IMG/VR virus record: IMGVR_UViG_3300040801_001224
Location: 62,001-126,000 of that record
Length of the DNA: 64,000 nt
Strand: one strand, 5' to 3'
Part shown: positions 15,643-62,078 of the stretch, piece by piece
How positions within the stretch are numbered: the first letter of the stretch is position 1
Layout of the letters: each line of letters begins with the position of its first letter
The notes under the pieces: generated by a model
The model's database searches: none
Told to the model about the DNA's origin: nothing
Seen by the model: only the letters and a program-made list of their open reading frames with translations
Made by a program: the position numbers and the translations under genes

Positions 15643-15647
15643 TAAAA

Positions 15648-15893
15648 ATGAAAGCAAAAGACCTCTTAGTCGAGTTTTATGATGAGTCAGCTACTGACGA
15701 ATTCGGTTATATATCAAGTGCTGATGAGGACGAACTGGAGCCACTTAAGAAAGGTGATACTAGAAAGCGTCCTAAACTAACACTTAAGCACTTAAATAAG
15801 CTACGTAAGTTAAAGCAAGTTAAGCGTAAAGAGAAGATTAAACACTTAGATTTAGTTCAGAGAATGTACGGCAATAAGCCTGACATGGAATAA
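15648..15893 (+). CDS. Small head-morphogenesis-region protein
   Basis: Acidic N-half and basic C-half (RKRPKLTLKHLNKLRK); lies between portal and prohead genes. Confidence 0.6.
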   Translation: MKAKDLLVEFYDESATDEFGYISSADEDELEPLKKGDTRKRPKLTLKHLNKLRKLKQVKRKEKIKHLDLVQRMYGNKPDME

Positions 15894-15944
15894 ACTAGCA
15901 TAAAATTTCTGGGTCACCTCCGCTAAATACTATACAAACTTCCG

Positions 15945-15969
15945 AAAAGGCGCCTTTTGGGTGCTTTTT
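15945..15969 (+). terminator. Possible intrinsic terminator
   Basis: AAAAGGCGCC-TTTTG-GGTGCTTTTT. Confidence 0.45.
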
Positions 15970-16045
15970 CCCCCTTCATATTACAATTCCGTTAAATACG
16001 TATAGAATAAATATATTCTGACGAATTCAAGGAGATTTTACCATT

Positions 16046-16834
16046 ATGTCAAAGAAACTAGAGCAGGTATTAGAATGCCTGATTAACGAAGAATCTGATC
16101 GTGCTAGTGAGTTACTTCATGACGTTATCGTTGAGAAGGCTCGTGGTCTATACCAAGAACTAGTGAACGAAGAAGATGATATGGAGTTAGAAGAAGAAGT
16201 CGTAGAGGAAGAAGAAGCAGTTGAAGAAGGTGAAGACTGTGATTCAGACGACGAAGAAGAGCTAAAAGAGTTTGCTGGAGACGAAGAAGACTTCGGTGGC
16301 GATATGGCTGACGACTTCGATAGCGAAATTGAAGCAGACATGACTGACGACGAAGGCGAATTCGACGCTGAAGAAAGCGACGAAGAAGAAGTTGAAGATC
16401 GTGTTGAGGACTTAGAAGCGGCATTAGCTGACTTACGTGCTGAGTTCGACGCTTTAATGGACGAAGAATTAGAAGAACCACACCACGACGCAGAAGACTT
16501 TGAAGTTGATGCTGACGACATGGACATGGAAGATGACATGGACGAAAGCATGATGGAAGCTACTAAGTTACAGGACAAAGTTGCTGAACCAAGCAATGTT
16601 GAAGGTGCTGATAACAAAGAAGCTCCATACACTAAAGCTCCAAGCAAGCGTTTAGACGGTGCGGATCCAGTTGATTTTGCTGGCGACGCAGAAGAGCAAG
16701 GTATGAAAGCTGAAAAAGGTTCAGACCACACTCCATCAGATAACATTGATGAAGAGCCAAGTGCTACACCAGCGGCTAAGCAAAGCGACAAAGCAGACGA
16801 AAAACACTCTTTATTCACTAAGGAGCCTAAGTAA
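16046..16834 (+). CDS. Highly acidic prohead core / internal head protein
   Basis: Very D/E-rich; directly upstream of the prohead protease (gp67/68 position). Confidence 0.6.
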   Translation: MSKKLEQVLECLINEESDRASELLHDVIVEKARGLYQELVNEEDDMELEEEVVEEEEAVEEGEDCDSDDEEELKEFAGDEEDFGGDMADDFDSEIEADMTDDEGEFDAEESDEEEVEDRVEDLEAALADLRAEFDALMDEELEEPHHDAEDFEVDADDMDMEDDMDESMMEATKLQDKVAEPSNVEGADNKEAPYTKAPSKRLDGADPVDFAGDAEEQGMKAEKGSDHTPSDNIDEEPSATPAAKQSDKADEKHSLFTKEPK

Positions 16835-19880: not shown

Positions 19881-21548
19881 ATGAACGAACGAGAACAAAT
19901 TATAGAACTTATCAAACAAAAACCAAAACATGTAACACAAATTATTAAAAGAGATGATCGGTTATCGATGTATGTATCGGATAATAAAAGAGTTAGTTCG
20001 GCTATATACGCAGAAGAAGTGTATTCGGCTATATACCCAGAAACAACGAACATATGTCCTAATAATAACTTAAAAAAGTTTAAATCGATTAAAGCCGGTT
20101 ATGCTTTTTGTGGCAGGGCAAACTCGTGCGAATGCGCTCGAAAGTCTGTGTCAGATAGTGTGTCGGCGAGTAAATCGAAATTTACAGATAACGATATATT
20201 AAATATTAACCGCAAACGAGAAGCAACCAATATAAAAAAATACGGAGTAAGCAATGTTGGACAGACAGCAAAAGCCAAAGCCAATCACCAAGCATATTAC
20301 GCAGACGACAATAATGTGTCTAAAACTGTTAAACAAATCGAACAAACAAAATTAGATAATTGGGGCAATAAGCATTATAATAATAGTCAGCAAATATCCT
20401 CTACCTGGCGGCAAAAGTCAGATAACGAAAAACAAAGAATAACCAAACAACGATTAAAAACGTATGCTGATAAGTATGGAGATAAGTCACTTCACCTTCT
20501 TCAGTCTTGGTATGATAAATTATGTGATTTTTTCGAAACTCACTACGATGTCAGTATGCTAACAAGCAAAGAAGAATACGTGGGTGTAAGTAACCAACAA
20601 TATTACGAGTTTAAGTGTAATAAATGCGAAGCAGAATTTACTACATACATAGATAATGGCCATCCGCCAATTTGTAAAAAATGTAATCCATCTCCTAAGT
20701 CTCAACCAGAACAAGATATACATGATTGGCTTGTAATGCATGGCATAGATCACGAGATGAACAACAAAACTATTTTAGATGGCAAAGAACTTGACATATA
20801 CATACCGGAAAAAAATATAGCAATTGAATATTGCGGTCTATATTGGCATTCGGATTTTCATAGTAGGATTGACAAATGGTATCACTACGACAAATGGAAA
20901 CAATGCCGAGACAAGAACATCCATCTTATAACTATATTCTCAGACCAATGGGTTCATAAGCGTGATATTGTACTTAAACGTCTTGAAACTAAATTAAAGA
21001 TAAATGTTAAATCTATCGGGGCTCGGAAAACACGTATACGCGAACTAACGAACACAGAAGAAAAAGAATTCTTCTTATTTAATCACATACAAGGCTACAA
21101 TCCAAGTAGAGTGGCTTATGGTTTAATAGAAAATGGCGAAATTGTAGCGGCCATGAGTTTTAAAAAGGTAAGATACCATAGCAAAGATTTATCAAAGGAC
21201 GACTGGGAATTACTAAGGTTTGCTTCATGTAAAAATGTGCAAGGCGGTGCAAGTAAACTTTTTAGGCATTTTATTAAAACAGTCGCCCCTTCGAAAATAG
21301 TTAGTTATAGTGATAATGACTGGAATACAGGGGGATTATATGAACAACTAGGGTTTACGTTGTCGAGGATTAGTGGACCATCATACTGGTACGCCAATGT
21401 CAACGATGATATTAGGTATCATCGGTTTAATTTTAGGAAGAAGGACACCGACCCTGACATGCCAGAAAATCAACGTGTATTTGAATCGCATAAATATCTA
21501 AGGTTTTGGGATACAGGCAATACTCGTTGGATATGGCAAGCCAGTTAA
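19881..21548 (+). CDS. Hef-like homing endonuclease (PD-(D/E)xK/Vsr-like nuclease plus GNAT/Mom-like C-terminal domain)
   Basis: CNKC...CKKC Zn ribbon; ELDIYIPEKNIAIEYCGLYWHS; NHIQG, WELLRFAS, GGASKLF, SYSD...GGLYEQLGF; own GATAAATA at 19848-19855. Confidence 0.75.
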   Translation: MNEREQIIELIKQKPKHVTQIIKRDDRLSMYVSDNKRVSSAIYAEEVYSAIYPETTNICPNNNLKKFKSIKAGYAFCGRANSCECARKSVSDSVSASKSKFTDNDILNINRKREATNIKKYGVSNVGQTAKAKANHQAYYADDNNVSKTVKQIEQTKLDNWGNKHYNNSQQISSTWRQKSDNEKQRITKQRLKTYADKYGDKSLHLLQSWYDKLCDFFETHYDVSMLTSKEEYVGVSNQQYYEFKCNKCEAEFTTYIDNGHPPICKKCNPSPKSQPEQDIHDWLVMHGIDHEMNNKTILDGKELDIYIPEKNIAIEYCGLYWHSDFHSRIDKWYHYDKWKQCRDKNIHLITIFSDQWVHKRDIVLKRLETKLKINVKSIGARKTRIRELTNTEEKEFFLFNHIQGYNPSRVAYGLIENGEIVAAMSFKKVRYHSKDLSKDDWELLRFASCKNVQGGASKLFRHFIKTVAPSKIVSYSDNDWNTGGLYEQLGFTLSRISGPSYWYANVNDDIRYHRFNFRKKDTDPDMPENQRVFESHKYLRFWDTGNTRWIWQAS

Positions 21549-49831: not shown

Positions 49832-49860
49832 TTGACAATGCCACTATTATATAGTATACT
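49832..49860 (+). promoter_or_regulatory. sigma70-type promoter for the GGDEF-EAL operon
   Basis: TTGACA (49832-49837), 17 bp, TATACT (49855-49860); a TATAAATA lies just upstream at 49820-49827. Confidence 0.8.
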
Positions 49861-49920: not shown

Positions 49921-50055
49921 ATGTTGTATAAGAGTGATTATGTTTCTGAAGAAGAACGTAAAGATATTGAAAAAGCGTACAGTAGCAAAAAACAGAAACG
50001 TAAGTTACAAAATACAATACCTGTAAAAGGAAATGACAGAAGAAGTCAGAATTAA
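49921..50055 (+). CDS. 44-aa basic upstream ORF overlapping the GGDEF-EAL start (not in ORF track)
   Basis: AAGGAGG (49907-49913), 7 nt, ATG; MLYKSDYVSEEERKDIEKAYSSKKQKRKLQNTIPVKGNDRRSQN*. Confidence 0.55.
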   Translation: MLYKSDYVSEEERKDIEKAYSSKKQKRKLQNTIPVKGNDRRSQN

Positions 50056-52009
50056 TTTTTATAAGATTGCTCTTGTATACTGGGTAGTGTTTGCTCTATT
50101 TGAGCTTCTGATGCACAGCATTTATATGAGTGGAGCAGGCGCTTATAGCAAAGTTGCCATCGTCGAAGCGATTTTATTTATATCTGGCATTGTGCTAACA
50201 ATACTTGCCAAAAATTCTCTCAAAGACGAAAGCAAAAAGATATATGATGAGCAGTATGAGAGAAAGATCAGGGATCTAGCATCACGTTCACCAACAATGG
50301 GAAGTGACGAATATTTCTCAGTCCTAACAAAAAACATTATTGATGCTGTTGGCTGTGATTATGTTGTTATTGGACAAATAAATTATACTGATAATACTAG
50401 TAAACCATACATAACAACTAAGTCAGCTCGTGGTAGAAATAGAGAGTATCTCCAAACTGAAGTATTATTAAAGACGAGCAACTGTCAAGTAACTGTTCAG
50501 GACATTGAAGATGCTGACCTATCTAGAATATTTAAGGGCAAAAAAGGCAGACACATAAACATGCCACTAGTGTCTAGTGATAACGATATCCATGGTATCC
50601 TGTCTTGTATTTGGATCGGCCCTGATCATCCGCCCAAAACTGCCAAAAACGTACTCAAAATATTTTCGACACAGTGTCAGTCAGAACTTGAGCGATTACT
50701 TACTGAAGAAAAACTTAAATATCAGGCAACTCACGATGAGTTAACTGGCCTACCAAATCGAAACTTTGTAATGGAAAAGTTAAAAGGTATAGTTACTAAA
50801 TACAATTCGGGTGTCATAACTAATAAAACATATAACGTTTATTTTATTGACCTGGATGATTTTAAAGAAGTTAATGACGAATTTGGGCATGACGCTGGCG
50901 ACCAGTTATTAGTGGAGATATCAAGAAGATTGGAGTCATGTGTGAGGGAAGAAGACACGGTGGCAAGACTAGGAGGCGATGAGTTTGTTATTGTTGAAGC
51001 AGGATCAACGAATGTTTCTTCAATTTCGCTATCAGATAGAATTATCAATAAATTACAGCAAGCCGTAAATCTTCATGACAACGTTTCTGTTACCGTGACT
51101 GCTTCAGTCGGGCATTTATGTATTCCTGAAGATTCACAAGATGTGACTGAAATATTCAAGTATGCTGACTTTGCCATGTATTACGCTAAATCACTGGGTA
51201 AGAATGTTGGTGTTAAATTTACTCAAGAACTATTCCGTGATTGTCAGCAAGAAAAAGTTATTGAAGGAAAGCTCATTAGTGCCATTGAGAATAAAGAAAT
51301 TGACATGGCCATCCAGCCAATTGTTGATCATAATCAAAAGATAGTGAAAGGTGAGGTACTGGCAAGATGGTTCTCAGATGACATTAGTCTAACAATTGAA
51401 GATGTGATTAACATTGCTGAGAGACGTGGCCTTATCGTTGCGTTCAGTAAACACATATTTGAAAAGTCAGCTGAATACTGCTCAGAACTTAAATTCGAAC
51501 ATGGCATTTATGCTAGACTCGCTGTTAACTGCTCGCCACTACTGTTTAAGGATCCAGAGTTTGTGCCATATATTTCCAGTGTGTTTGATAAGTATAACAT
51601 AAGTCCTAAACAAATTACTCTTGAAATTACAGAGTCAGTAGCAAGTAAGCACAAGGAAATATTGCCTACTATTGTCGACTTAAAGAGTAGGGGATTTGAA
51701 CTGGCACTTGACGATTTCGGCAAGGGATATTCATCATTGAGTTTTCTAGAAACCTTGCCAATTGATGTAGTGAAACTTGATAGGGCATTGGTTACAGACG
51801 CAATTGGCAACAAGAAGAAGTCTACATTATTGAAAGCCGTAGCTGAGATTTGTAAGGTGTATGAATACAAGTTGGTTGCCGAGGGAATTGAAACTAAAAA
51901 AGACTTTGAGTTTTTGAAAAAATTGGGGTATGACTGGCTACAAGGATATTACTTTTCTAGACCGGTACCATCAGAAGAATACACAAAGTTATTGACACAG
52001 GAGAAATAA
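50033..52009 (+). CDS. Membrane-anchored GAF-GGDEF-EAL diguanylate cyclase / phosphodiesterase
   Basis: Two N-terminal hydrophobic helices; HDELTGLPNR, FIDLDDFKEVNDEFGHDAGD, REED I-site, RLGGDEF; EVLARW, VNCS, LEITES, DDFGKGYSS, VKLDR, AEGIE, LQGYYFSRP. Confidence 0.95.
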   Translation: MTEEVRINFYKIALVYWVVFALFELLMHSIYMSGAGAYSKVAIVEAILFISGIVLTILAKNSLKDESKKIYDEQYERKIRDLASRSPTMGSDEYFSVLTKNIIDAVGCDYVVIGQINYTDNTSKPYITTKSARGRNREYLQTEVLLKTSNCQVTVQDIEDADLSRIFKGKKGRHINMPLVSSDNDIHGILSCIWIGPDHPPKTAKNVLKIFSTQCQSELERLLTEEKLKYQATHDELTGLPNRNFVMEKLKGIVTKYNSGVITNKTYNVYFIDLDDFKEVNDEFGHDAGDQLLVEISRRLESCVREEDTVARLGGDEFVIVEAGSTNVSSISLSDRIINKLQQAVNLHDNVSVTVTASVGHLCIPEDSQDVTEIFKYADFAMYYAKSLGKNVGVKFTQELFRDCQQEKVIEGKLISAIENKEIDMAIQPIVDHNQKIVKGEVLARWFSDDISLTIEDVINIAERRGLIVAFSKHIFEKSAEYCSELKFEHGIYARLAVNCSPLLFKDPEFVPYISSVFDKYNISPKQITLEITESVASKHKEILPTIVDLKSRGFELALDDFGKGYSSLSFLETLPIDVVKLDRALVTDAIGNKKKSTLLKAVAEICKVYEYKLVAEGIETKKDFEFLKKLGYDWLQGYYFSRPVPSEEYTKLLTQEK

Positions 52010-52012
52010 AAA

Positions 52013-52378
52013 ATGGAATTTGAAAAGCCGAGTTATACTTATAACGCAACACTTTTGAAAGTTATTGATGGTGATACGATTGATGTAATGATTGATTTGG
52101 GTTGCTACACAAGCGTAAGAAAGCGTCTACGCTTCTTAGAGATTGACACTGAAGAATTGCGTGATCGTGATATTGAACGTAGAGAAGATGCGGCAGAAGC
52201 TAAAGAAAGAGTTACTAACTTATTGGAAAATGCTGATAAAATATATGTTCAAACCGTTATGGATTCAACAGGAAAATATGGGCGTCTATTAGCTTATGTT
52301 TGGTATGAAGATGAGTACGGTGTACAGAATTTAAATACTCAATTGTTGAGGGAAGGCTTCCAGAAGAAACCTAGATAA
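52013..52378 (+). CDS. Staphylococcal-nuclease (SNase/thermonuclease)-like protein
   Basis: VIDGDTI, RLRFLEIDTEE, GKYGRLLAYVW. Confidence 0.85.
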   Translation: MEFEKPSYTYNATLLKVIDGDTIDVMIDLGCYTSVRKRLRFLEIDTEELRDRDIERREDAAEAKERVTNLLENADKIYVQTVMDSTGKYGRLLAYVWYEDEYGVQNLNTQLLREGFQKKPR

Positions 52379-52404
52379 AAAAAGCGGCTAAAGCCGCTTT
52401 TTTC
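52377..52404. terminator. Bidirectional intrinsic terminator between convergent genes
   Basis: A8-GCGGC-TAAA-GCCGC-T6. Confidence 0.85.
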
Positions 52405-52427
52405 ATGTTTCAAAGTTTGATCACTTA

Positions 52428-52817
52428 TTAAGCGTCAACGTCAGTGTCATCACCTAAATCTGCATCTACTGAATCAGTAGCTGAATCAGCTTCTTTTGTA
52501 ATGTCACTCCATACGTAAAAACCACCAGCGAAACCGTATACACGGTGTGCCGTAATTTTACGTGCGTAGTCTGCTCCACCGTTAATTGCAATGCTCATTT
52601 CGCCTGGTGCCGCCGGAGCGCCATCAACTAATTTGCATACCAATGTAGTTAAGCCGGTAGCCGCATCAGCCACCTCAAACTTGCGGTTCGAACGTTGACG
52701 AACAATGTAACATGCTTCAGCCGCAATCCCGCCTTCAAACCATGCGGAACCAGTGATCTGAAATCCATCGCCACCTGCGTCAGGTCCGAAATACTTAGAA
52801 TCAATCGGTCTACCCAT
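52428..52817 (-). CDS. Conserved-looking late (probably virion) protein
   Basis: MGRPIDSKYFG start; RBS AGGAG; GATAAATA on the - strand at 52851-52858. Confidence 0.6.
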   Translation of the reverse strand: MGRPIDSKYFGPDAGGDGFQITGSAWFEGGIAAEACYIVRQRSNRKFEVADAATGLTTLVCKLVDGAPAAPGEMSIAINGGADYARKITAHRVYGFAGGFYVWSDITKEADSATDSVDADLGDDTDVDA

Positions 52818-52893
52818 TTTTAAATTCTCCTATATAAATGGTTGTACCGATATTTATCACAATCATACAGAAAAAATAGATAAATATAGGACT

Positions 52894-53190
52894 ATGGAAA
52901 AAATAAATTATACACCGGATATTAACGCAATTGTGTCTATCCCTGAGATAGCAGAAGCTTTAGGTACCGCAGTATCAGTATTAGATGTTTGGTTCCCTCA
53001 CGTATCAAAGAATATAGTCTTACGATGGGGCAAGCCAGAATTCGCTGAATACTATGGCACCCTTGTTCAGACAACACGCCCTCACAGGCAAGGATTCCCT
53101 TTTGATGCCCTAAATGAAATAAGCATCATAGCAGACGTCCATAATGAACTATTCCCACAATACAAATCAGACCTAAGAATATTCATGTAG
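52894..53190 (+). CDS. Hypothetical protein
   Basis: 98-aa ORF after GATAAATA (52879-52886) and AGGA. Confidence 0.55.
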   Translation: MEKINYTPDINAIVSIPEIAEALGTAVSVLDVWFPHVSKNIVLRWGKPEFAEYYGTLVQTTRPHRQGFPFDALNEISIIADVHNELFPQYKSDLRIFM

Positions 53191-53294
53191 GTGTTATAGT
53201 CAGGTATAACACCCTGTTACATTTTCTTCACTTTTCGTTACACTCTATTAATATTTTAATCTATAAATATTAGTATAGAACAAGGAGAAGTGTG

Positions 53295-53438
53295 ATGTCT
53301 ATTCTATTAATTATATTTGTTTCAATGCTGTTAGCTTGGAACTATTTTGAGCAACCAGAATGGTGTAGATCGTTTTGGGAGTGGATTTCTAACGTCTGGA
53401 ATAGTCCGGAAAAAGAAAAAGAAGTGGAGGAAAAATAA
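53295..53438 (+). CDS. 47-aa single-pass membrane protein (not in ORF track)
   Basis: AAGGAG RBS; MSILLIIFVSMLLAWNYF...EKEKEVEEK*. Confidence 0.55.
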   Translation: MSILLIIFVSMLLAWNYFEQPEWCRSFWEWISNVWNSPEKEKEVEEK

Positions 53439-53602
53439 TGGGTATTGTAATAGCAACAGGTCTAAGCATAGCGGCAATTATTGCGGCACGTAGACATAAA
53501 AATAGTGATCCGGGCACCGGTAAAGTGGTAGCAGGATTTGGTATATTTTTACTATTAGTTGCCATAGGCAACGCAGGCCATCAAACATGGCACATTTGTT
53601 AA
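53438..53602 (+). CDS. 54-aa two-helix membrane protein (not in ORF track)
   Basis: TAATG overlap with the preceding ORF, GGAGG upstream; two hydrophobic segments. Confidence 0.55.
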   Translation: MGIVIATGLSIAAIIAARRHKNSDPGTGKVVAGFGIFLLLVAIGNAGHQTWHIC

Positions 53603-53631
53603 CTAAATAGTTCTGTTAACCCATATACTGG

Positions 53632-53660
53632 TTGACAGGACCACTTTCTTCCTGTATAAT
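53632..53660 (+). promoter_or_regulatory. sigma70-type promoter for rIIA
   Basis: TTGACA, 17 bp, TATAAT. Confidence 0.85.
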
Positions 53661-53696
53661 GATGTTATTAAGTTAACAAATGCAGGAAGGAAGTTT

Positions 53697-55823
53697 ATGA
53701 AAAAGATACAAGAAAATGGCTTAGACATTGGTTTAGAGTCACATCAATTTCAAATGAAAGCGTCAGCTAAGGCGTTCTCAATTCTTTCAAGTGGTTTGTA
53801 TTCAAATAAAGTACAAGCTGTAATCCGTGAATTATCATGTAATGCGTATGATGCTCAAGTTGAAGCTGGTAACGCAGACCTCCCGTTCGACGTAAAACTT
53901 CCAGACAATAACTATGGCAAGGACACTTTTTATGTTCGTGACTATGGCACTGGTTTAACTGAAGAGCAGATCTACAATGTGTACACAACTTACTTTGAGT
54001 CTACTAAAACAGAATCAAACGATTATGTCGGTGCGTTAGGCTTAGGTTCCAAATCACCATTCTGTTTAACAGATTCTTTTACTGTTGAATCATTTGTTGA
54101 CGGCAAACTATTAACATTCCTGGCTTTCATTGGTAAAGAAGGTATGCCGGAAATATCTAAAGTTGGTGAAGCAGAGACTACTGAATCAAATGGTTTGAAG
54201 GTGTCTTTTGAAACTGACGCGGGTCCTGGAAAGTTTCGTCGAGAAGCCAGGAACCTTTTCAAATGGTTCCCGGTTGTGCCAAATTTCATAACAAATGAAG
54301 AATTGGCCGTTGAAACTGTTGAGCCATTGCGTACATTGAGTGACACTGTTAAGGTTTACCCGGGTAACGTATTCGGTTACGATGAGCGTATCCTTGTGAA
54401 GCAGGGCACAGTGGTTTATCCGATTCCGGAAAGCATTATGCGACAGCATTTTGCGGAATTTGAATATCTATCATCAATGAGATTGGTCATTGAAGTTGAC
54501 CTCGGTCAAGTGGATATCACTGCCAGCCGTGAGTCATTAAGTTTTGTTGAAATGACAGTCACTAACATGAAAGCTAAGTTTCAGGAAATTGACACTTTAG
54601 TTAGAGGTGCAATTACTGAAGAGCTAGATGTGCAGGAGGGTAATATCTGGAAGCTTACTGAAGCGACGGAAAGACTTGGTCATATCTACCCAAGTAGTTT
54701 AATTTGGGAACATGAAATTGTGCGTAGCCATCCACAGTATGATTCTAATGACTTTAGGTTGCCTGAAACCGAGTACCTTAATAAGAAATCTGAAACTGTT
54801 ACTATTAAAAAGTACAGCACATGGAGTAACCGCATTAAGGGCGGATCCGGCAAGGAGTATCCTTTCCATAGTACGTTTGGTAAAGAGGTGACTGTTAAGG
54901 CCAAAACAAATACTGTGTTTATGGTCAACGACACAACTCGTGGACCATTAAATGTTGCTCGAGAGTACTTGAAAAAGAACACTGTTTCACAGCTTATTGT
55001 AATTGATTACGTTAATCGTAGGAATTATTCTAAGCGTGTTGTTAACCGTATTCTGAAGGAGTTCGAGAATCCAACTAACGTAGTGTTTGTTAGTGATTTG
55101 CCTAAACCGACTCGTATGACGACTAAAATTGATCCTAAAGAGATTCGTATCCGCCAAGCAAATAATATGGACGTTCAGTATTGGGATGCAGATTGGACTA
55201 CACGTAGTTACAATGAAGAACGTGACGGTGATGCTTACTTTGTAAACCTGGAACGTTCTACTATTGTGGATGGCGACTTCGATGGAAAGATTGATGAGAT
55301 GAAGCGCATTGTGGAAAACGTATTCCCTAATTTTTACAATAAGGTTAAGGTGTGTGGTATTCCAAAAGCACAAAAGCACAAGTTGGCTAAGGCTGGCATC
55401 GAGCTTAATTCATTCATTGACTTATTGAAAGAAAAAGTTGCTGAGATTACAGTCAACGACATCCGAATTAAGTCATTCATTGACTTGCCAGATTGGGCTG
55501 ACACAGGTGAGTTTAAGAAGGCTTTTGAAAACGGTGACATCACTGAGCCTAGAGTGGTTGAGATGATGACCCGGTACACCCTTTCTTCAGCAAAGTCTAA
55601 GAATGGTGTTAGCAAGCGATACCTGAAGAACTTAGCATTAAGGTTTGGTATCGAGCTTGCTCCGGAAGTCAAAAACTTCCTGGACAAGGATCCTGAAGCT
55701 ACTGAGGATTACCGAGCCAATGTTACTGCTATTGAAGAGTCATTCCCAATGGTTAAGTTCCACAGGGCAGGTTGGAATACAGACGATGCAACAAAAGCGT
55801 TGGTGGATTACTTAAACGGATAA
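53697..55823 (+). CDS. rIIA: rIIA-like protein (GHKL/Hsp90-type ATPase N-terminus)
   Basis: KAFSILSSGLYSNKVQAVIRELSCNAYDA, VRDYGTGL, YFESTK, GALGLGSKSPF, SRESL. Confidence 0.85.
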   Translation: MKKIQENGLDIGLESHQFQMKASAKAFSILSSGLYSNKVQAVIRELSCNAYDAQVEAGNADLPFDVKLPDNNYGKDTFYVRDYGTGLTEEQIYNVYTTYFESTKTESNDYVGALGLGSKSPFCLTDSFTVESFVDGKLLTFLAFIGKEGMPEISKVGEAETTESNGLKVSFETDAGPGKFRREARNLFKWFPVVPNFITNEELAVETVEPLRTLSDTVKVYPGNVFGYDERILVKQGTVVYPIPESIMRQHFAEFEYLSSMRLVIEVDLGQVDITASRESLSFVEMTVTNMKAKFQEIDTLVRGAITEELDVQEGNIWKLTEATERLGHIYPSSLIWEHEIVRSHPQYDSNDFRLPETEYLNKKSETVTIKKYSTWSNRIKGGSGKEYPFHSTFGKEVTVKAKTNTVFMVNDTTRGPLNVAREYLKKNTVSQLIVIDYVNRRNYSKRVVNRILKEFENPTNVVFVSDLPKPTRMTTKIDPKEIRIRQANNMDVQYWDADWTTRSYNEERDGDAYFVNLERSTIVDGDFDGKIDEMKRIVENVFPNFYNKVKVCGIPKAQKHKLAKAGIELNSFIDLLKEKVAEITVNDIRIKSFIDLPDWADTGEFKKAFENGDITEPRVVEMMTRYTLSSAKSKNGVSKRYLKNLALRFGIELAPEVKNFLDKDPEATEDYRANVTAIEESFPMVKFHRAGWNTDDATKALVDYLNG

Positions 55824-55840
55824 TCATAGCGCAAAAACTT

Positions 55841-55891
55841 AACTCCTATTTGATAAATATTGTATAATAACAATATATACAGATAGGAGTT
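55841..55891 (+). promoter_or_regulatory. RBS-sequestering hairpin with a late promoter in the loop (may also terminate rIIA transcripts)
   Basis: AACTCCTAT (55841-55849) pairs with ATAGGAGTT (55883-55891); GATAAATA at 55852-55859. Confidence 0.7.
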
Positions 55892-55898
55892 TTTTTTC

Positions 55899-56693
55899 AT
55901 GTCCAGTTTTCTTGAAATCCGCAATGTTGTGGCTAAAGAAATCGACTTAAACAATTGTGATAAAAAATATGATCACAAATATTTCTTAGCATCAATGTAC
56001 TTTGCCCAGCTAGTCTATTTTCGATGGGAGTTTGTCATCTGTTCATTGAAGTCTTTACCTGGTTATGTTTCTCATGAAATATATGATATAGATGGCGTCC
56101 AAGCATTCATGGTAGAATTTGAGAAAACAGCGTGGGTGTCATTCCGTGGCACTGAAATGAAGATCAACGACTGGAAAACAATCCTTAAATTTTGGCAAAA
56201 CGACTACAATAATACTGAAGCTCATGATGGCTTTGCCAGTGCGTTGAGTAAGATCAAAGATCCCGTACTTCGAAAAATTACACAAATGCGAGTAGCTGGC
56301 AAGAGAATACATTTCGTTGGCCATTCAATGGGTGGCGCTCTAGCTACCCTGTTGGCAATTACCCATAAGCCGGAATCCTTAATTACTTTTGGTTGCCCTA
56401 GAGTACTTAAAGGTGATTACTATAAAGAATACTTTCTTTCATTCCCATTTTTTAGAATGGAAAAGCAATGGGATCCTATCACACACATTCCGTGGGCAAT
56501 GCCATTCATCACAACATATAGACATGTTGGCAAGGCGATTGAAATGCCGGGTGAATTTGCCTTCATAAAAAATCATTTCATCAAATCATATTTAAGAACA
56601 GCATTGAACGAATACTATGCTGAATCAACTGGTATCCCAACATCTTTCGCCAGAGTATCAGCAAGAGATCTAAAGCGTATAAAATCATCTTGA
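55899..56693 (+). CDS. Class 3 lipase (alpha/beta hydrolase)
   Basis: VSFRGT, HDGF, VGHSMGGALA nucleophile motif, TFGCPRV, DPITHIP. Confidence 0.9.
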   Translation: MSSFLEIRNVVAKEIDLNNCDKKYDHKYFLASMYFAQLVYFRWEFVICSLKSLPGYVSHEIYDIDGVQAFMVEFEKTAWVSFRGTEMKINDWKTILKFWQNDYNNTEAHDGFASALSKIKDPVLRKITQMRVAGKRIHFVGHSMGGALATLLAITHKPESLITFGCPRVLKGDYYKEYFLSFPFFRMEKQWDPITHIPWAMPFITTYRHVGKAIEMPGEFAFIKNHFIKSYLRTALNEYYAESTGIPTSFARVSARDLKRIKSS

Positions 56694-56718
56694 CAAAACC
56701 ACTACACTATGTTATAAT
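56690..56718 (+). promoter_or_regulatory. sigma70-type promoter with extended -10
   Basis: TTGACA (56690-56695), 17 bp, TG-N-TATAAT (56713-56718). Confidence 0.85.
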
Positions 56719-56724
56719 GTTAGT

Positions 56725-56889
56725 GTATAGAGGTAAAACTCGTGTGGACGTTCGCGGTGTAAGGGGCTCGTCGGCTGATCTCAATATGAATAACTCAACA
56801 CACCACATACATAGAAGTGTTGACGTTTCTTATAGTAGGCAAAAAACCGCATAATACATGTAAATGACCCTGAGGGTGGTTCTCTATAC
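56725..56889 (+). ncRNA. Candidate ~165-nt rod-like small RNA or structured leader
   Basis: The predicted +1 region GTATAGAG (56725-56732) pairs with CTCTATAC (56882-56889); internal helices GCGGT/ACCGC and TAAGGGGC/GTTTCTTA. Confidence 0.4.
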
Positions 56890-56939
56890 TTGACATCAGA
56901 AATGATGAGTGATCCGCCCACATATATAAAGGAACTAAT

Positions 56940-57413
56940 ATGAGTAAAGAAATCGAACGAAAGTTTTTAGTAAATCAGAAACAATTGCCAGCATTATTTG
57001 ATCCAGACTATATCATCCAGGGATATTTACATTCTGATGAAAACAAATCAATCCGAGTGCGTGTCAACAGTGATGGATATAATGCTAAAGGCACACTGAC
57101 AGTTAAGAGTCGTCGTGTAGGCTTAACCTGTGACGAATATGAATATGAAATCCACCCAGACGATGCTCAAGAAATGCTTGATAATATGTGTGACAAAACA
57201 ATGTGTAAAGAACGCTATTACATCAAGCACGATGATCATATGTGGGAGATTGACGTGTTCCAGGGTGATAGTGAAGGGCTTGTTATTGCTGAAATAGAAC
57301 TGTCTACTGAAGGTGAGAAGTTTCCATTTCCAGACTGGGTTGATGCCGAGATATCAGATGATCCCAAGTATTTGAATGTCAATTTATTGGAAAATCCTTA
57401 TAAAAATTGGTAA
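56940..57413 (+). CDS. CYTH-domain (triphosphate tunnel) enzyme, CyaB-like
   Basis: EIERKFL (ExExK), IQGYL, IRVR, EYEYEI, KERY, WEIDVF, AEIEL, PDW..EISDDPKY. Confidence 0.92.
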   Translation: MSKEIERKFLVNQKQLPALFDPDYIIQGYLHSDENKSIRVRVNSDGYNAKGTLTVKSRRVGLTCDEYEYEIHPDDAQEMLDNMCDKTMCKERYYIKHDDHMWEIDVFQGDSEGLVIAEIELSTEGEKFPFPDWVDAEISDDPKYLNVNLLENPYKNW

Positions 57414-57423
57414 TTTACATTCT

Positions 57424-57450
57424 GTAACATTCGTAACATTCGTAACACTT
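57424..57450. repeat. Three tandem 9-bp repeats upstream of flagellin
   Basis: GTAACATTC GTAACATTC GTAACACTT. Confidence 0.8.
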
Positions 57451-57498
57451 AACAGGCTCAAAATACCCGTAACCGACCCAAAACCAGGGTACTCAAAG

Positions 57499-57506
57499 CA
57501 TAAATA
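57499..57506 (+). promoter_or_regulatory. Late-promoter-like motif upstream of flagellin
   Basis: CATAAATA, one mismatch to the local GATAAATA consensus, 36 nt before the ATG. Confidence 0.5.
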
Positions 57507-57542
57507 AAAGTGTAGAGCATATATAATCGAGGAGAAAGGAAT

Positions 57543-58358
57543 ATGATTACTATTAATTCAAACACATTGGCTTCATCTATTAGTAATAACTTTAATAGTA
57601 TTAGCAAGCGCATCGATGATGTTTCACGTTCAATTGCGTCAGGCAAGAGAATTAACTCAGCTAAGGATGACCCTGCTGGCTTATTCCAAGCAAACGCATT
57701 ACGCACACAGACGAGCTCATACAACGTAGTTCGCAATAACTTAACATTTGGTACTTCACTATTGGAAACAGCAAGTTCAGCATTAAGCACAGTCGTAAAT
57801 GACTTGGGCAAGATGCGTGACCTAGCTGTCCAGGCGGCAAGTGGCACACTTTCAACAGAAGGTCGTGCGGCACTACAGGCAACATTTGCAGAATACCAGT
57901 CACAGATTGATGATACGGTATCTAACGCATCAGTATTCGGCCAGAACTTAGTTTCGGCGGCCGCGGCAGATGTTGATATCCAGTCAGGCATCAACGCAGG
58001 TCAGACAACTACCGTTACAGCGGCGGCTTCAGATGCTACGACATTGGGTGTTAATGCGTTAGACTTAACTTCAGAAGCAAATGCGTCAGCGGCTATCACA
58101 GCCATTGATACTGCTATTGCTACGGCCGGTACTAACCAGTCTACGTTTGGTGCCCAGTTAAATCGCATTGAATCAATTGACGCAAATGTGGCTAACATTG
58201 TTGAAAATTTAGAATCAGCACGTTCACGTATTGAGGATGCTGATGTAGCACAGCTAACAACAGACCTAGCACAGTTGCAGGTTCAACAGCAGTTAGCGTC
58301 AGCAATGTTAGGAATTGCTAACCAGTTACCACAGAGCTTCTTAACACTATTACGTTAA
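57543..58358 (+). CDS. fliC: Flagellin (minimal, D0/D1 only)
   Basis: SGKRINSAKDDPAG, MRDLAVQAASGT, FGAQLNR, NLESARSRIEDAD, ANQLPQSFLTLLR. Confidence 0.95.
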   Translation: MITINSNTLASSISNNFNSISKRIDDVSRSIASGKRINSAKDDPAGLFQANALRTQTSSYNVVRNNLTFGTSLLETASSALSTVVNDLGKMRDLAVQAASGTLSTEGRAALQATFAEYQSQIDDTVSNASVFGQNLVSAAAADVDIQSGINAGQTTTVTAAASDATTLGVNALDLTSEANASAAITAIDTAIATAGTNQSTFGAQLNRIESIDANVANIVENLESARSRIEDADVAQLTTDLAQLQVQQQLASAMLGIANQLPQSFLTLLR

Positions 58359-58371
58359 AGGGTGAATAACA

Positions 58372-58722
58372 ATGGACGTTGGCCAAGTTAAATCACAGTA
58401 TAGCTTAGTAGCAGGGAATAAAGGAGACATCAAACCTCCCGAGCCTCCTAAAGGAACTGCTACTGAACCGCTCGTTCGTGATTACAGCATTGAAGAGATG
58501 CAGGATTTGGCTCGGGCGGCAAATGCTTCTATGCCCAATAGTAGTATTCGTTTTAAGATTGATGAACAAGGCGAGCCGCCTATCATTGTCATTATTGATC
58601 CAGAAACAGATGAAATAGTAAGACAGATACCTCCAGAAGAGATTCAAAATATCAGAGATATGGTTGAGTCTCTTCAAAATGGAGAAAGTTACATAACTAA
58701 TTTTATAGATAGGTACGCATAA
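58372..58722 (+). CDS. flaG: FlaG-like flagellar protein
   Basis: IRFKIDE...IVIIDPETDEIVRQIPPEE; directly after flagellin. Confidence 0.88.
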   Translation: MDVGQVKSQYSLVAGNKGDIKPPEPPKGTATEPLVRDYSIEEMQDLARAANASMPNSSIRFKIDEQGEPPIIVIIDPETDEIVRQIPPEEIQNIRDMVESLQNGESYITNFIDRYA

Positions 58723-59072
58723 TGAATACAGGCATAGATGCTTATAAAAAAGTTTCAGTAGAAACATCCACTCCGGAAGATCTTTCAATGAAGGTCATTA
58801 ACAGTATCCTTTCATACATTAAGGAAGCACAACTCCTGCCATTGGAGACACCAAAGTACAAAGAGTGTTTACTTAATGCTCAGATGCTTTGTGTGGGCGC
58901 CATATTTAGTCTATCAGGCAATGAGCGCACAAAGGCTAATGTTGTACTGACTAACGTATTTGACAGTGTTCAAAGTGAACTATTGCTTGTTTTAAAAGAT
59001 GGTACCGGTGACCTAAACCAATGTAAGCGTCTACTAAGCCTATTAACTGAAAAGCCAGAATACATAGGATAG
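58722..59072 (+). CDS. fliS: FliS-like flagellin export chaperone (divergent)
   Basis: N-terminal AYKKVSVETSTPEDL motif; helical; position after fliC-flaG; TAATG coupling. Confidence 0.72.
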   Translation: MNTGIDAYKKVSVETSTPEDLSMKVINSILSYIKEAQLLPLETPKYKECLLNAQMLCVGAIFSLSGNERTKANVVLTNVFDSVQSELLLVLKDGTGDLNQCKRLLSLLTEKPEYIG

Positions 59073-59113
59073 TGATAAATAAGTGTACTAATAACCATTT
59101 AATGGAGTACACA

Positions 59114-59755
59114 ATGAAATATATATTACTTGCGATTACACTTGCCTTCACACTTATCACACAAGCAAGTGATGAAAAATCCGTTAATCAAATACCACAA
59201 GCGGCGACTAAGTCACTTGATAGGCTACTTAAATCACAAGACAACAGCGCCGAAGCTCGCTTAAAGAGACAAGTCATCCAGCTACAGAATGAACTTCGCT
59301 CAGCCAATCGAGCTTATTACGCATTGTCTAAAGAAAACGAAGATCTTAGAATTCAACTTGAAGCATCACAGCAATCTGAAGCATATGCCGAACCTGAAGA
59401 AGAATTATATACAGCTGAGCAAGTTGAAGAACTAGTCCAGAACGCACAGAACGAAGTGTGGTCAGACAGCATGATCTACAGAATTGCTGAGCGTGAATAC
59501 TTACTGGCTCAAGACAATATCGTTCATGGAAAATTTATAGTAGAAGATATGTTAGCTTCAGATTATGCTAACCTACGCTCAGTATATGGCGAAGATTTTG
59601 ATTTTAGCTCTTATGTAGGTAAAGCAGTTGAAGAGTACAGAACTTACTTTGAAGCCAGATTCCCGCGTGGTGAAGAGTTACATAAAGCAACCACTGAAAT
59701 ATTATCAGCAATGTGTACAGTGGGTCCACAAGAACCAGAATTAGGAATTGAATAA
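59114..59755 (+). CDS. Secreted/periplasmic coiled-coil protein
   Basis: MKYILLAITLAFTLITQA signal peptide; GGAG RBS; GATAAATA at 59074-59081. Confidence 0.65.
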   Translation: MKYILLAITLAFTLITQASDEKSVNQIPQAATKSLDRLLKSQDNSAEARLKRQVIQLQNELRSANRAYYALSKENEDLRIQLEASQQSEAYAEPEEELYTAEQVEELVQNAQNEVWSDSMIYRIAEREYLLAQDNIVHGKFIVEDMLASDYANLRSVYGEDFDFSSYVGKAVEEYRTYFEARFPRGEELHKATTEILSAMCTVGPQEPELGIE

Positions 59756-59758
59756 AAA

Positions 59759-60214
59759 ATGCCACCAGAAGATAACAGAGAAGGTATTCTATTAGAAATA
59801 TCACCAATACAGTTTGTGAGTGTAGTTGGAACAATAGCATCTGCTATCGTTGGCGTTACTATATATGTTGTTTTAAACTACACACCACTCAACTCGCACA
59901 CGACTCTATCACAGAAACATGATGCTCTATCAGGAAAGACTACTACGATTATCGAAGAGAACGCAAAGGTGCCAGTGGCACTGGACGTTATGTCCAGTAA
60001 AATCGTTGATCTAACCCAAGACATTGACAGCAAAATAGCAGAAGTTGAAGAAAGAAATCTAACCCTACGTAGGAATGTGTTGATACGTATCAAGGACGAC
60101 GTTGGCGGTGTTGCCAACATGAAAAAAGAACATCGTGCTGAACTACGTGACATTGAAGACATTATGCTACAGCAAGGATACTTATCCCCAGCCTCGAGGA
60201 CACAGGGCCTGTAA
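59759..60214 (+). CDS. Single-pass membrane protein with coiled coil
   Basis: IQFVSVVGTIASAIVGVTIYVVL hydrophobic helix, then a heptad-like region. Confidence 0.6.
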   Translation: MPPEDNREGILLEISPIQFVSVVGTIASAIVGVTIYVVLNYTPLNSHTTLSQKHDALSGKTTTIIEENAKVPVALDVMSSKIVDLTQDIDSKIAEVEERNLTLRRNVLIRIKDDVGGVANMKKEHRAELRDIEDIMLQQGYLSPASRTQGL

Positions 60215-60220
60215 AATAGG

Positions 60221-60249
60221 TTGACAGCACCACTTATTTGTAGTATAAT
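60221..60249 (+). promoter_or_regulatory. sigma70-type promoter
   Basis: TTGACA, 17 bp, TATAAT. Confidence 0.85.
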
Positions 60250-61905: not shown

Positions 61906-62078
61906 GTGCAATTGAGCAACCTAAACAATTTGTAAAGATGCAGGATGTTGTCCAGACACTAATCGATTCTGTCAATGAGTTGAACGGTGAACTGGAGGAC
62001 ATGAGAGAATTTATAGAAGAAAGTAGCCTTTCGGAAGAATACCGAAAGCATAAGATGGTAAATACCTTAAAGAAATAA
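61902..62078 (+). CDS. Small protein, SSL-EE family member 3
   Basis: ATGA overlap at 61902; EFIEESSLSEEYRKHK. Confidence 0.6.
   Translation: MSAIEQPKQFVKMQDVVQTLIDSVNELNGELEDMREFIEESSLSEEYRKHKMVNTLKK

Follow-up and report, generated by a model that had tools for sequence, protein, structure and literature searches.

A jumbo phage without an integrase carries a flagellin, FlaG and FliS-like chaperone cassette that belongs to a phage-only flagellin lineage

A flagellar cassette in a jumbo phage

We found that a 328,096-bp virus (IMG/VR record IMGVR_UViG_3300040801_001224), which has direct terminal repeats and no integrase, carries its own flagellin together with FlaG and a FliS-like putative export chaperone, and that this cassette belongs to a phage-only flagellin lineage seen here in many T4-like phage contigs. 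Nearby genes for a c-di-GMP enzyme and a CYTH enzyme look like independent cargo and not parts of one system. We analyzed a window of 64,000 nucleotides, positions 62,001 to 126,000 of the record, which also holds portal, tail sheath and long tail fibre genes. A first-pass annotation had described positions 50033-59072 of this window as phage genes interleaved with a c-di-GMP turnover enzyme, a CYTH enzyme and a flagellin-FlaG-FliS cassette, with sigma70 early promoters at the signalling genes and a late-type motif at flagellin. All of the named genes are present, and this observation was confirmed. The features of the region, all on the plus strand, are as follows:

49832..49860 (+), sigma70-like promoter (11/12 consensus), 172 nt upstream of the GGDEF-EAL gene
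50033..52009 (+), membrane-anchored GGDEF-EAL protein (658 aa), both catalytic motif sets intact
52013..52378 (+), SNase-family nuclease, a conserved backbone neighbour
53632..53660 (+), perfect sigma70 consensus promoter, 36 nt before rIIA
53697..55823 (+), rIIA homologue (708 aa; phrog_612, 9e-116)
55899..56693 (+), class-3 lipase / alpha-beta hydrolase (Lipase_3), preceded by a GATAAATA late-type motif
56690..56718 (+), perfect sigma70 consensus promoter with TG extension, heading the run CYTH, flagellin, FlaG, FliS, with no terminator-like site in between
56940..57413 (+), CYTH / triphosphate-tunnel enzyme (157 aa)
57424..57447 (+), three tandem GTAACA repeats at a 9-nt period
57499..57506 (+), CATAAATA, a late-promoter-like motif 36 nt before the flagellin ATG
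57543..58358 (+), flagellin (271 aa)
58372..58722 (+), FlaG (116 aa)
58722..59072 (+), FliS-like flagellin export chaperone (116 aa), as predicted from its modelled fold
59072..59755 (+), 227-aa protein, N-terminus resembling (by eye) a signal peptide followed by coiled coil

The GGDEF-EAL protein has two N-terminal TM helices, a GGDEF domain (Pfam 2.6e-39; GGDEF motif and RxxD I-site intact) and an EAL domain (2.1e-56; EVL, EITES, DDFGKGYSS, KLD, EGIE and QG all present). The CYTH protein scored 28.8 bits against a 23.2 cut-off and carries an N-terminal ExExK motif, EIERK. The flagellin matched Flagellin_N (1e-25) and Flagellin_C (4.8e-18), with N- and C-terminal helical domains and a short middle region that we read, by inference, as D0/D1 only. 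FlaG was identified at 2.9e-12. The last gene of the cassette fell below the Pfam FliS threshold (E 0.085, although the match was full length). Its AlphaFold model (pLDDT 85.6) is a four-helix bundle with an N-terminal helix carrying I5/Y8/V11, and has FliS structures as top PDB hits (5maw_E, 6gow_E, 6lea_A). FliS proteins are also the top four Swiss-Prot hits, although Foldseek E-values for such a small helical bundle are weak (6e-3).

Promoter motifs around the cassette

We next examined the promoter motifs. The exact pattern TTGACA-N17-TATAAT occurs 6 times in the window against 0.03 expected, with copies before rIIA and before CYTH, and an 11/12 site lies before GGDEF-EAL. The motif upstream of flagellin, CATAAATA, is a 7/8 match to this phage's dominant upstream motif GATAAATA. 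Of the 99 genome copies of that motif, 76 lie within 150 nt upstream of ORFs, including in front of structural genes. Three relatives (L007, L008 and L111) have TATAAATA at the same position. The late-motif claim is therefore plausible but weaker than the sigma70 claim. The proposed early/late split is also uncertain, since no terminator-like site separates CYTH from flagellin and the perfect sigma70 promoter at 56690 could also drive flagellin. The GTAACA repeats upstream of flagellin are the only such triple in the 328-kb genome; they are conserved in L007 and L008, degenerate in L111, and may be a regulator site for flagellin expression.

The c-di-GMP and CYTH enzymes are distributed independently of flagellin

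The first-pass annotation further proposed a two-stage programme in which early enzymes reset c-di-GMP and cAMP and a late phage flagellin is then supplied. The genes do lie within 9 kb on one strand, strong sigma70 promoters precede GGDEF-EAL and CYTH, and a late-like motif precedes flagellin. The order rIIA, lipase, CYTH, flagellin, FlaG is kept in L007, and CYTH, flagellin, FlaG, FliS in L008, although such synteny is what close relatives would show anyway. Independent distribution among relatives had been named beforehand as the outcome that would refute this linkage, and we observed it in both directions. GGDEF and CYTH are absent from all 11 other flagellin-bearing viral records; as most relatives are incomplete contigs, this absence is firm only for the two records that are at least 90% complete. 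Conversely, the syntenic relatives L111 and L112 keep GGDEF-EAL, SNase, rIIA, lipase and CYTH in the same order but have no flagellin cassette at that locus, a loss that is shown only for that locus or contig. L111 retains a deletion scar, a 42-aa C-terminal piece of FliS fused to the flagellin leader, and L112 has a different gene in the slot. The 227-aa ORF, which borders the variable slot downstream, is kept in relatives without the cassette and is not part of it.

Residues 234-651 of the GGDEF-EAL protein align with the closest solved tandems, 5m3c and 4rnh, the latter deposited as 'Motility regulator', which speaks for the proposed link, but no PilZ or MCP genes are in the genome, which speaks against it. 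The best solved relatives of the CYTH protein are 3typ and 2fbl (NE1496 of Nitrosomonas europaea; E about 4e-10), and no class IV cyclase was matched. A specific inorganic triphosphatase of the CYTH superfamily was characterised from that species (PMC3440374). This enzyme is reportedly NE1496 itself. CYTH proteins of jumbo phages have likewise been read as triphosphatases (PMC7824862). The cAMP inference for CYTH is thus unsupported, although a cyclase activity is not excluded biochemically.

The interpretation of the first-pass annotation was therefore partly supported: the phage carries a coherent flagellar cassette, and the reading of a phage flagellin supplied to the infected cell is strengthened by comparative data, whereas the linkage of GGDEF-EAL, CYTH and the flagellar genes into one programme is not supported. 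We consider that model largely refuted by distribution and very unlikely.

Flagellin and a FliS-like chaperone form the core of the module

To investigate what constitutes the unit, we compared phage flagellin loci. A FliS-family ORF lies directly next to flagellin in every distinct phage locus with enough flank (20 of 20), either 4-172 nt upstream or about 1.2-1.3 kb downstream of the flagellin start, behind FlaG where FlaG is present. There was one hit per roughly 20-kb locus and none in the flagellin-less L112. FlaG follows flagellin in 11 loci, a FlgK-like hook-associated protein in 6 (340 aa, with Flg_bb_rod, FlgK_D1 and Flg_bbr_C domains), and neither in 3.

We then asked where these flagellins come from. 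The 21 flagellins from phage contexts form one clade with SH-aLRT support of 100 on a 0.62 stem, apart from the 80 nearest bacterial flagellins. The contexts include gp32, T4 baseplate, DNA polB, DnaB, RNaseH, RNA ligase, Thy1 and PhoH. With metagenome proteins added, the clade holds 65 further protein clusters and no bacterial genome locus, and the best matches found among species-representative bacterial genomes reach only about 42% identity. Flagellin dN is 0.14-0.18 with dS 1.4-1.8 (dN/dS about 0.1), indicating strong purifying selection, while neighbouring genes have dN 0.26-0.57. Flagellin is 79-81% identical between relatives whose rIIA is 41% and whose CYTH is 38-50% identical, and universal flagellin motifs are invariant across the clade.

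These data also bear on whether the genes could be host DNA mis-assembled into the contig or a recent non-functional pickup. GenBank 'phage' hits to flagellin are short, dubious records that look like host contamination. However, the genome studied here has direct terminal repeats and is rated 100% complete, the same cassette occurs in more than 20 independent phage contigs from different samples, the clade is monophyletic and under purifying selection, and the upstream region carries phage-type late-like motifs. An artefact or passive capture is refuted by these comparative data.

The chaperone keeps predicted export-gate contacts

In the phage chaperone family, Y8 is invariant in 24 members, with a hydrophobic residue at -3 in 22 of 24 and V/I at +3 in 19 of 24. 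This corresponds to the FliS Ile7/Tyr10/Val13 triad that contacts FlhA-C (PMC5932034). FlaG antagonises FliS-flagellin docking at FlhA (PMC11536152).

Taken together, our data suggest that the 9-kb stretch is not one system but a run of independently inherited accessory genes in a T4-like jumbo myophage, in which one true functional unit, the flagellin, FlaG and FliS-like cassette (57543-59072), occupies a variable cargo slot between CYTH and the 227-aa ORF. No tyrosine integrase was found in 5 large records. What the comparison establishes is that the cassette is one form of a module found across many T4-like phage contigs, with an invariant core of a phage-lineage flagellin plus an adjacent FliS-like chaperone and either FlaG or a FlgK-like protein as an optional third gene; the mechanism, including export, chaperone binding and incorporation into a host filament, is inferred only from homology and conserved contact residues. 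In this view, which we hold with moderate confidence, the phage would make its own flagellin during infection, and the phage chaperone would hold the flagellin C-terminus and dock on the FlhA export gate of a presumably flagellated host through its conserved Ile/Tyr/Val helix. The flagellin would then be exported by the host flagellar type III apparatus and polymerise under the host cap onto existing filaments, or onto hooks in the phages that bring a FlgK-like protein. No FliD cap gene was seen in the annotated flanks, so the model depends on host caps. FlaG would tune export, or bias it against host flagellin, although as an inhibitor of flagellin export it fits a shut-down model as well as a fine-tuning model. 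A search for runs holding the sequence, not restricted to RNA, listed no RNA run, and the model rests on sequence and structure comparison alone. The net effect would be that the infected cell keeps or changes its filament after host gene expression is taken over. Candidate benefits are sustained swimming of the infected cell, or a filament surface that flagellum-binding phages, possibly including the phage's own progeny, can no longer use.

Alternatively, the cassette could act at the host export gate or in host flagellar regulation to stop or redirect host flagellar assembly without building a phage-type filament. FlaG would block FlhA, and the FliS-like protein and flagellin would titrate host partners such as FlhA, FliW/CsrA or FlgM, saving energy or removing a receptor. 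The antagonism of FlaG at FlhA, the retained docking triad, through which the phage FliS could compete with the host chaperone, and the lack of a FliD gene in the annotated flanks of the cassette loci are consistent with this possibility. However, a decoy does not need a flagellin conserved in both its N- and C-terminal helical domains and under strong purifying selection, and the FlgK-like hook-filament junction protein paired with flagellin in six loci makes sense only for assembly. Moreover, FlaG is missing from 9 of 20 loci, whereas flagellin and FliS are never separated. We regard this model as possible but unlikely.

A non-flagellar use, in which the flagellin-like protein is a virion or other extracellular fibre component and the small helical protein its assembly chaperone, appears very unlikely. 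The cassette does lie a few kb downstream of tail-fibre genes with a late-like promoter motif, and the clade is phage-specific. However, flagellin polymerisation needs export and a cap, and the partners are specifically flagellar: FlaG, a FliS fold with the FlhA-docking triad, and a FlgK-like protein. In other phages the cassette sits among replication and nucleotide-metabolism genes, not structural ones.

Comparison with known systems

The GGDEF-EAL catalytic core aligns end to end with tandem proteins such as 4rnh and 5m3c with all motifs kept, but its N-terminal two-TM plus roughly 150-aa domain is shared only with five phage-context relatives. Full-length relatives exist only on relatives' contigs, and the gene is phage-borne with a distribution independent of flagellin. 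The CYTH protein resembles the Nitrosomonas europaea proteins 2fbl (NE1496) and 3typ in size (about 155 aa), CYTH fold and ExExK motif, and is a predicted rather than demonstrated triphosphatase; CYTH triphosphatases are scattered through jumbo phages (PMC7824862).

Flagellar genes have been reported in phages at the level of annotation. Flagellin and FlaG are listed among the 'morons' of Nitrosospira phage roc1 (FlaA, FlaG, FliJ, FliI; 10.64898/2026.05.02.722434), but only as a table entry with no analysis of lineage, chaperone pairing or mechanism. The chaperone family also shows some similarity to Caulobacter FlaF (PF07309), a flagellin regulator/chaperone: six of 24 members give weak FlaF hits, and Caulobacter FlaF is structural hit number 7 in Swiss-Prot. 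FlaF is a small helical protein that acts on short flagellins of about 273 aa. However, the FliS matches are better and full length, no FlbT partner was seen, and the similarity may only reflect a shared FliS-like fold.

In the late flagellar operons of polar flagellates (fliC-flaG-fliD-fliS type), the gene families and order are the same, namely flagellin, FlaG and FliS. There, FliS docks flagellin on FlhA (PMC5932034) and FlaG competes at FlhA to limit filament length (PMC11536152). In contrast, no fliD was seen in the annotated flanks of the phage cassette, no flagellar rod-family gene was found in the genome, the upstream motifs recognised are phage-type late-like and sigma70 ones, and the FliS is too divergent for Pfam's threshold. 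The genes sit in a virus and form their own clade.

Flagellin-remodelling prophages of Enterobacter (FR-phi; TldR-FliC(P); PMC13418256, 10.1101/2023.11.30.569447) also carry a divergent flagellin, which replaces host flagellin in the filament. FR-phi is a temperate siphophage that silences host fliC with an RNA-guided TnpB-derived repressor and uses the host chaperone, whereas no TnpB/TldR domain was found in the 328-kb genome described here, which has direct terminal repeats and no integrase. Here the flagellin always travels with its own FliS-like chaperone, plus FlaG or a FlgK-like protein in 17 of the 20 loci, and is a short 271-aa type lacking large middle domains that belongs to an old phage-only clade rather than being a host-like isoform.

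Gene content of the region

We first examined if the genes named in the first-pass annotation are present. The window is bases 62001-126000 of an IMG/VR virus record that is 328,096 bp long, carries direct terminal repeats and is rated 100% complete, and the window encodes a portal, a tail sheath and long tail fibres. Within the structural gene block, a few kb downstream of the portal gene, lies a 555-aa HNH/homing-endonuclease-like ORF with a late motif (19881-21548). From 50033 on the + strand, we found the following genes in order:

a 658-aa protein with two TM helices, GGDEF and EAL
an SNase nuclease
two small unknown ORFs, one of them on the minus strand
rIIA
a class-3 lipase
a 157-aa CYTH protein
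a 271-aa flagellin
FlaG
a 116-aa ORF

The genes described in the first-pass annotation are therefore present, and that observation is confirmed. The GGDEF-EAL protein retains the GGDEF active-site motif (RLGGDEF) with an RxxD inhibitory site (REED) five residues upstream, as well as the E(A/V)L, N, ExxE, DDFGxGYSS, KxD, EGxE and QG catalytic and metal-binding motifs of EAL domains. It aligns end to end with the solved tandems 5m3c and 4rnh, the latter deposited as 'Motility regulator'; cyclase and phosphodiesterase activities are predicted from sequence alone. A second GGDEF-like gene lies outside the window in the same phage (G000:C1:244152-244808). It has hydrophobic N-terminal segments, read by eye as two TM helices, and a degenerate domain with SDNAF in place of GGDEF, and could encode a non-catalytic nucleotide-binding protein.

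The flagellin matches PF00669 at 90.8 bits (cut-off 26.6) and PF00700 at 65.7 bits (cut-off 23.0), with full domain coverage. The window protein carries the universal signature motifs, RINSAKDD-AG in the N-terminal domain and RIEDAD and a terminal LLR in the C-terminal domain, and the core residues are invariant or nearly so across 25 clade members. FlaG matches PF03646 at 47 bits (cut-off 23.8) and is the only FlaG match in the genome.

The 116-aa ORF was less straightforward to assign. It matches FliS (PF02561) end to end, but at only 13.6 bits against a gathering score of 26.7 (E 0.085), and a PDB sequence-profile search with a four-member alignment of the family did not find FliS. A profile search of 1.8 billion representatives recovered a small family of 24 proteins of about 110 aa, of which four gave weak FliS hits and six gave weak FlaF hits. 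We therefore turned to a fold search. An AlphaFold model built on this alignment (pLDDT 85.6) has the predicted four-helix bundle with an N-terminal cap helix seen in solved FliS structures. Its top PDB matches are 5maw_E, 6gow_E, 6lea_A, 1orj and 3iqc (TM 0.5-0.67), its top four Swiss-Prot matches are FliS, and Caulobacter FlaF is seventh, although E-values are weak (at best 2.5e-3). The BFVD viral structures contained no named FliS-like protein. We accept the ORF as a divergent FliS-like chaperone.

Promoters upstream of the region's genes

We next investigated the promoters of the region. The exact pattern TTGACA-N17-TATAAT occurs six times in the window against 0.03 expected, at the following positions, all on the + strand:

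3426
8862
53632, 36 nt before rIIA
56690, ahead of CYTH
60221
63172

The three copies in 53632-60221 share ACCACT a few bases after the -35 hexamer, and an 11/12 site precedes GGDEF-EAL. The exact T4 late motif TATAAATA is not enriched in the window (9 found against 6.3 expected). The dominant upstream motif of this phage is instead GATAAATA, one base different from the T4 motif, often preceded by T and with TA about 12 nt downstream. Of its 99 genome copies, 76 lie within 150 nt upstream of ORFs, typically 20-35 nt from the start codon. Examples in the window lie upstream of 46199, 35382 (minus strand), 21874, 19881 and 11459. Since it precedes the portal block, sheath and tail-fibre genes, it is the likely late promoter. 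Flagellin has CATAAATA 36 nt upstream, a 7/8 match with poor flanks, while three relatives' contigs (L007, L008 and L111) have TATAAATA at the same place. No terminator-like site separates CYTH from flagellin, and flagellin may therefore be read from both the sigma70 promoter and a late promoter. The clean early/late split proposed in the first-pass annotation is not established.

A phage-only flagellin lineage

To place the flagellin, we searched 5.8 billion proteins and obtained a graded series of 271-275-aa flagellins from 84% down to about 43% identity, all from metagenome contigs, with named bacterial flagellins appearing only near 40%. Every contig that could be inspected is phage-like, and mostly T4-like, carrying gp32, T4 baseplate, DNA polB, DnaB, RNaseH, RNA ligase, Thy1, PhoH, NAMPT and many small co-directional ORFs. 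Other host-like auxiliary genes occur on flagellin-bearing phage contigs (L108:31-327; L009:507-2538 and 15202-16599; L110:7933-8583), namely DsrC, a fatty-acid desaturase with an acyl carrier protein, a radical SAM protein, cytochrome c, NAMPT, ClpP and PhoH. Single-protein scans of IMG/VR with flagellin and rIIA found nothing, whereas a scan with a profile of the clade added 12 viral contigs of up to 318 kb. A scan of one genome per bacterial species returned best matches of no more than 42% identity. GenBank phages contain nothing comparable: near-identity DNA and protein searches with the region and with flagellin found nothing at 1e-5, and at E<=1 there were only weak hits (30-38% identity; one of 46.6% over 27% of the query) in short or dubious records.

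In a maximum-likelihood tree, the 21 phage-context flagellins form one clade (SH-aLRT 100; stem of 0.62) separate from the 80 nearest bacterial flagellins. With the metagenome proteins added, the clade contains 65 further clusters and no bacterial genome locus. Two IMG/VR records from isolate genomes (L024 and L026) carry flagellins that group with Bacillaceae host flagellins rather than with the phage clade, and these are probably host genes inside loosely bounded proviruses. Flagellin is also the best-conserved gene in its neighbourhood. It is 79-81% identical between relatives (dN 0.14-0.18; dS 1.4-1.8), compared to 41% for rIIA, 38-50% for CYTH and 45-56% for FlaG. On the basis of this phylogeny and selection, we rejected host contamination and recent capture as explanations for the flagellar genes. 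A search for sequencing runs listed only DNA metagenomes (microbial mat, marine sediment) and, without being restricted to RNA, no RNA run, and look-ups of the protein clusters gave no organism names from which a host could be inferred.

Flagellin is paired with a FliS-like protein

We then asked what travels with the flagellin. An HMM of the chaperone family found exactly one member next to flagellin in every distinct phage locus with enough flank (20 of 20), lying either 4-172 nt upstream, or about 1.2-1.3 kb downstream of the flagellin start, behind FlaG where FlaG is present. It found none in a flagellin-less relative. The third gene varies: FlaG homologues follow flagellin in 11 loci, a FlgK-like protein of about 340 aa with Flg_bb_rod, FlgK_D1 and Flg_bbr_C domains directly follows it in six loci, and three loci have neither. 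The FlgK-like genes include those on the flagellin-bearing phage contigs listed here:

L010:10858-11916
L012:10864-11886
L023:10860-11882
L109:6840-7859
L110:6841-7865, where it is split into 223-aa and 110-aa ORFs

The core is therefore flagellin plus a dedicated chaperone, with a filament-length factor or a hook-filament junction protein as options. One 97-kb phage-like contig with a clade flagellin (L005:2547-4698) also encodes a methyl-accepting chemotaxis protein and CheW 5-7 kb upstream of it, so chemotaxis genes may also travel in these phages. In the present genome, searches for further motility parts (Flg_bb_rod, MCPsignal and PilZ) were negative, and the genome therefore carries no wider flagellar or chemotaxis set.

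Export through the host flagellar apparatus is the best reading. In the solved FlhA-C/FliS/FliC complex, FliS Ile7, Tyr10 and Val13 on helix 1 insert into the FlhA cleft, and Tyr10 is essential and absolutely conserved (PMC5932034). The window protein has I5/Y8/V11. Across the family, the Tyr is invariant in 24 of 24 members, position -3 is I/V/L/M/A in 23 of 24, and position +3 is V/I in 19 of 24. FlaG has been shown to compete with FliS-flagellin complexes for FlhA and so limit filament length in polar flagellates (PMC11536152). In this view, all three cassette proteins would converge on one host target, the FlhA gate, and a FlgK-like partner in other phages makes sense only if a filament is actually built. 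While the gene pairing and the phage-only lineage come directly from the comparative data, docking at FlhA, export by the flagellar T3SS and polymerisation into a filament are inferred from homology, and nothing here shows secretion or assembly. The benefit to the phage could be sustained swimming, exclusion of flagellotropic phages, or avoidance of progeny loss on debris.

GGDEF-EAL and CYTH appear to be inherited independently of flagellin

The first-pass annotation had proposed that the c-di-GMP enzyme, CYTH and the flagellar genes form one system, and had named their co-distribution among relatives as a test. We found that GGDEF and CYTH are absent from all 11 other flagellin-bearing viral records, although most relatives are fragments and the result rests on two records at least 90% complete, of 96 kb (90%) and 318 kb (91%), and several fragments. 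Conversely, the relative contig L111 is colinear with the window from the tail fibre through GGDEF-EAL (66% identity), SNase, rIIA (61%), lipase and CYTH (52%) to the downstream ORFs, but at the position of the cassette (L111:14530-14850) there is only a 42-aa ORF. This ORF matches the last 43 residues of the FliS-like protein (63% identity) and is fused in frame to the flagellin promoter, ribosome-binding site and ATG region. Flagellin, FlaG and two thirds of fliS are gone, and this is a deletion scar. A second relative, the 63-kb IMG/VR contig L112, has the same backbone and no flagellin anywhere in the record. Its slot is filled by a 267-aa ORF (L112:17796-18599) whose N-terminus looks, by eye only, like an NAD-binding sugar dehydrogenase. 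The slot between CYTH and the 227-aa ORF is therefore a variable cargo site, and GGDEF-EAL and CYTH are backbone accessory genes inherited independently of flagellin.

The suggested cAMP link through CYTH is likewise unsupported. CYTH superfamily membership holds (28.8 bits against a cut-off of 23.2, with ExExK present), but the only solved-structure matches at E<=1 are 3typ and 2fbl (NE1496 of Nitrosomonas europaea), and we did not find closer kinship to characterised class IV (CyaB-type) adenylate cyclases than to triphosphatases. A specific inorganic triphosphatase of the CYTH superfamily was characterised from that species (PMC3440374). This enzyme is reportedly NE1496 itself. CYTH proteins in jumbo phages have also been interpreted as triphosphatases (PMC7824862). 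Taken together, the first-pass interpretation was only partly supported, in that the phage carries a flagellar cassette but the second-messenger plus flagellin system, although attractive, is unsupported. What remains is a compact, testable three-protein set (flagellin, FliS-like, FlaG) and a candidate RNA leader.

Candidate regulatory elements upstream of flagellin

Directly after the CYTH stop, three tandem GTAACA repeats at a 9-nt period (57424-57447) precede the flagellin promoter region. This is the only such triple in the 328-kb genome. It is conserved in L007 and L008, while two of the three repeats are degenerate in L111, which lost the cassette. In a sister subclade, the same hexamer, GTAAYA, is displayed as the loop of a 4-bp hairpin between the chaperone gene and flagellin, in the leaders of these flagellin-bearing phage contigs:

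L009:9928-9941
L012:9937-9950
L017:9946-9959
L018:9941-9954
L020:9945-9958
L022:9907-9920
L014:9962-9975
L023:9960-9973
L005:9967-9980

Five different stem sequences occur and all are perfectly complementary, three of the four pairs show compensatory double changes, and none of 500 shuffles reached the observed score. Since MAFFT misaligned the leaders of L014, L023 and L005, the hairpin was scored on an anchored 22-nt alignment chosen by eye or regex, which is biased towards pairing and inflates these numbers. In the L009, L012, L017, L018, L020 and L022 leaders, a second covarying hairpin follows, and then a GGUUC segment that pairs with the ribosome-binding site in single-sequence folds. 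Rfam has no family matching the leader. This looks like a translational control leader for phage flagellin, and is a candidate riboregulator.

Comparison with known phage flagellins

Phage-encoded flagellin was described only recently, and only for temperate prophages that repress host fliC with an RNA-guided factor. Phrase searches for viral or phage flagellin found no paper, a 224-genome jumbo-phage survey has no word beginning with 'flagell', and a 2026 preprint lists FlaA and FlaG among genes of a Nitrosospira phage without analysis. The phenomenon observed here is different and much broader, comprising at least 65 protein clusters and more than 20 phage contigs with T4-like gene content. 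If the flagellin is assembled into filaments, infected cells in mats and sediments would be motile on viral terms, which bears on virus dispersal, on exclusion of flagellotropic competitors, and on how the export gate discriminates chaperone-substrate complexes. A further and more tentative possibility, which we consider somewhat less likely than not, is that a large, old lineage of integrase-less T4-like and jumbo phages keeps a private flagellin with its own FlhA-docking chaperone, plus FlaG or a hook-junction protein, and in one subclade a structured leader that appears to hide the ribosome-binding site. On this reading, lytic phages would use the module to rebuild or re-surface the flagellar filament of the cell they are killing, and would then control swimming or flagellar receptor identity of infected cells. 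This would be a class of virus-encoded organelle takeover distinct from the prophage TldR system.

The nearest described case is the TldR-FliC(P) prophage system, in which a temperate siphophage represses host fliC and supplies its own isoform, changing motility and immune recognition, and which its authors call the first known prophage-encoded flagellin (PMC13418256). The present module differs from it in several respects. In lifestyle, no tyrosine integrase was found in this genome or in the five large records tested. In regulation, we found no Cas12f1-like/TnpB domain in the 328-kb genome and no TldR-like gene among the cassette's neighbours. In composition, the flagellin comes with its own FliS-like chaperone, plus FlaG or a hook-associated protein, and in evolutionary status it belongs to an old, phage-only clade.
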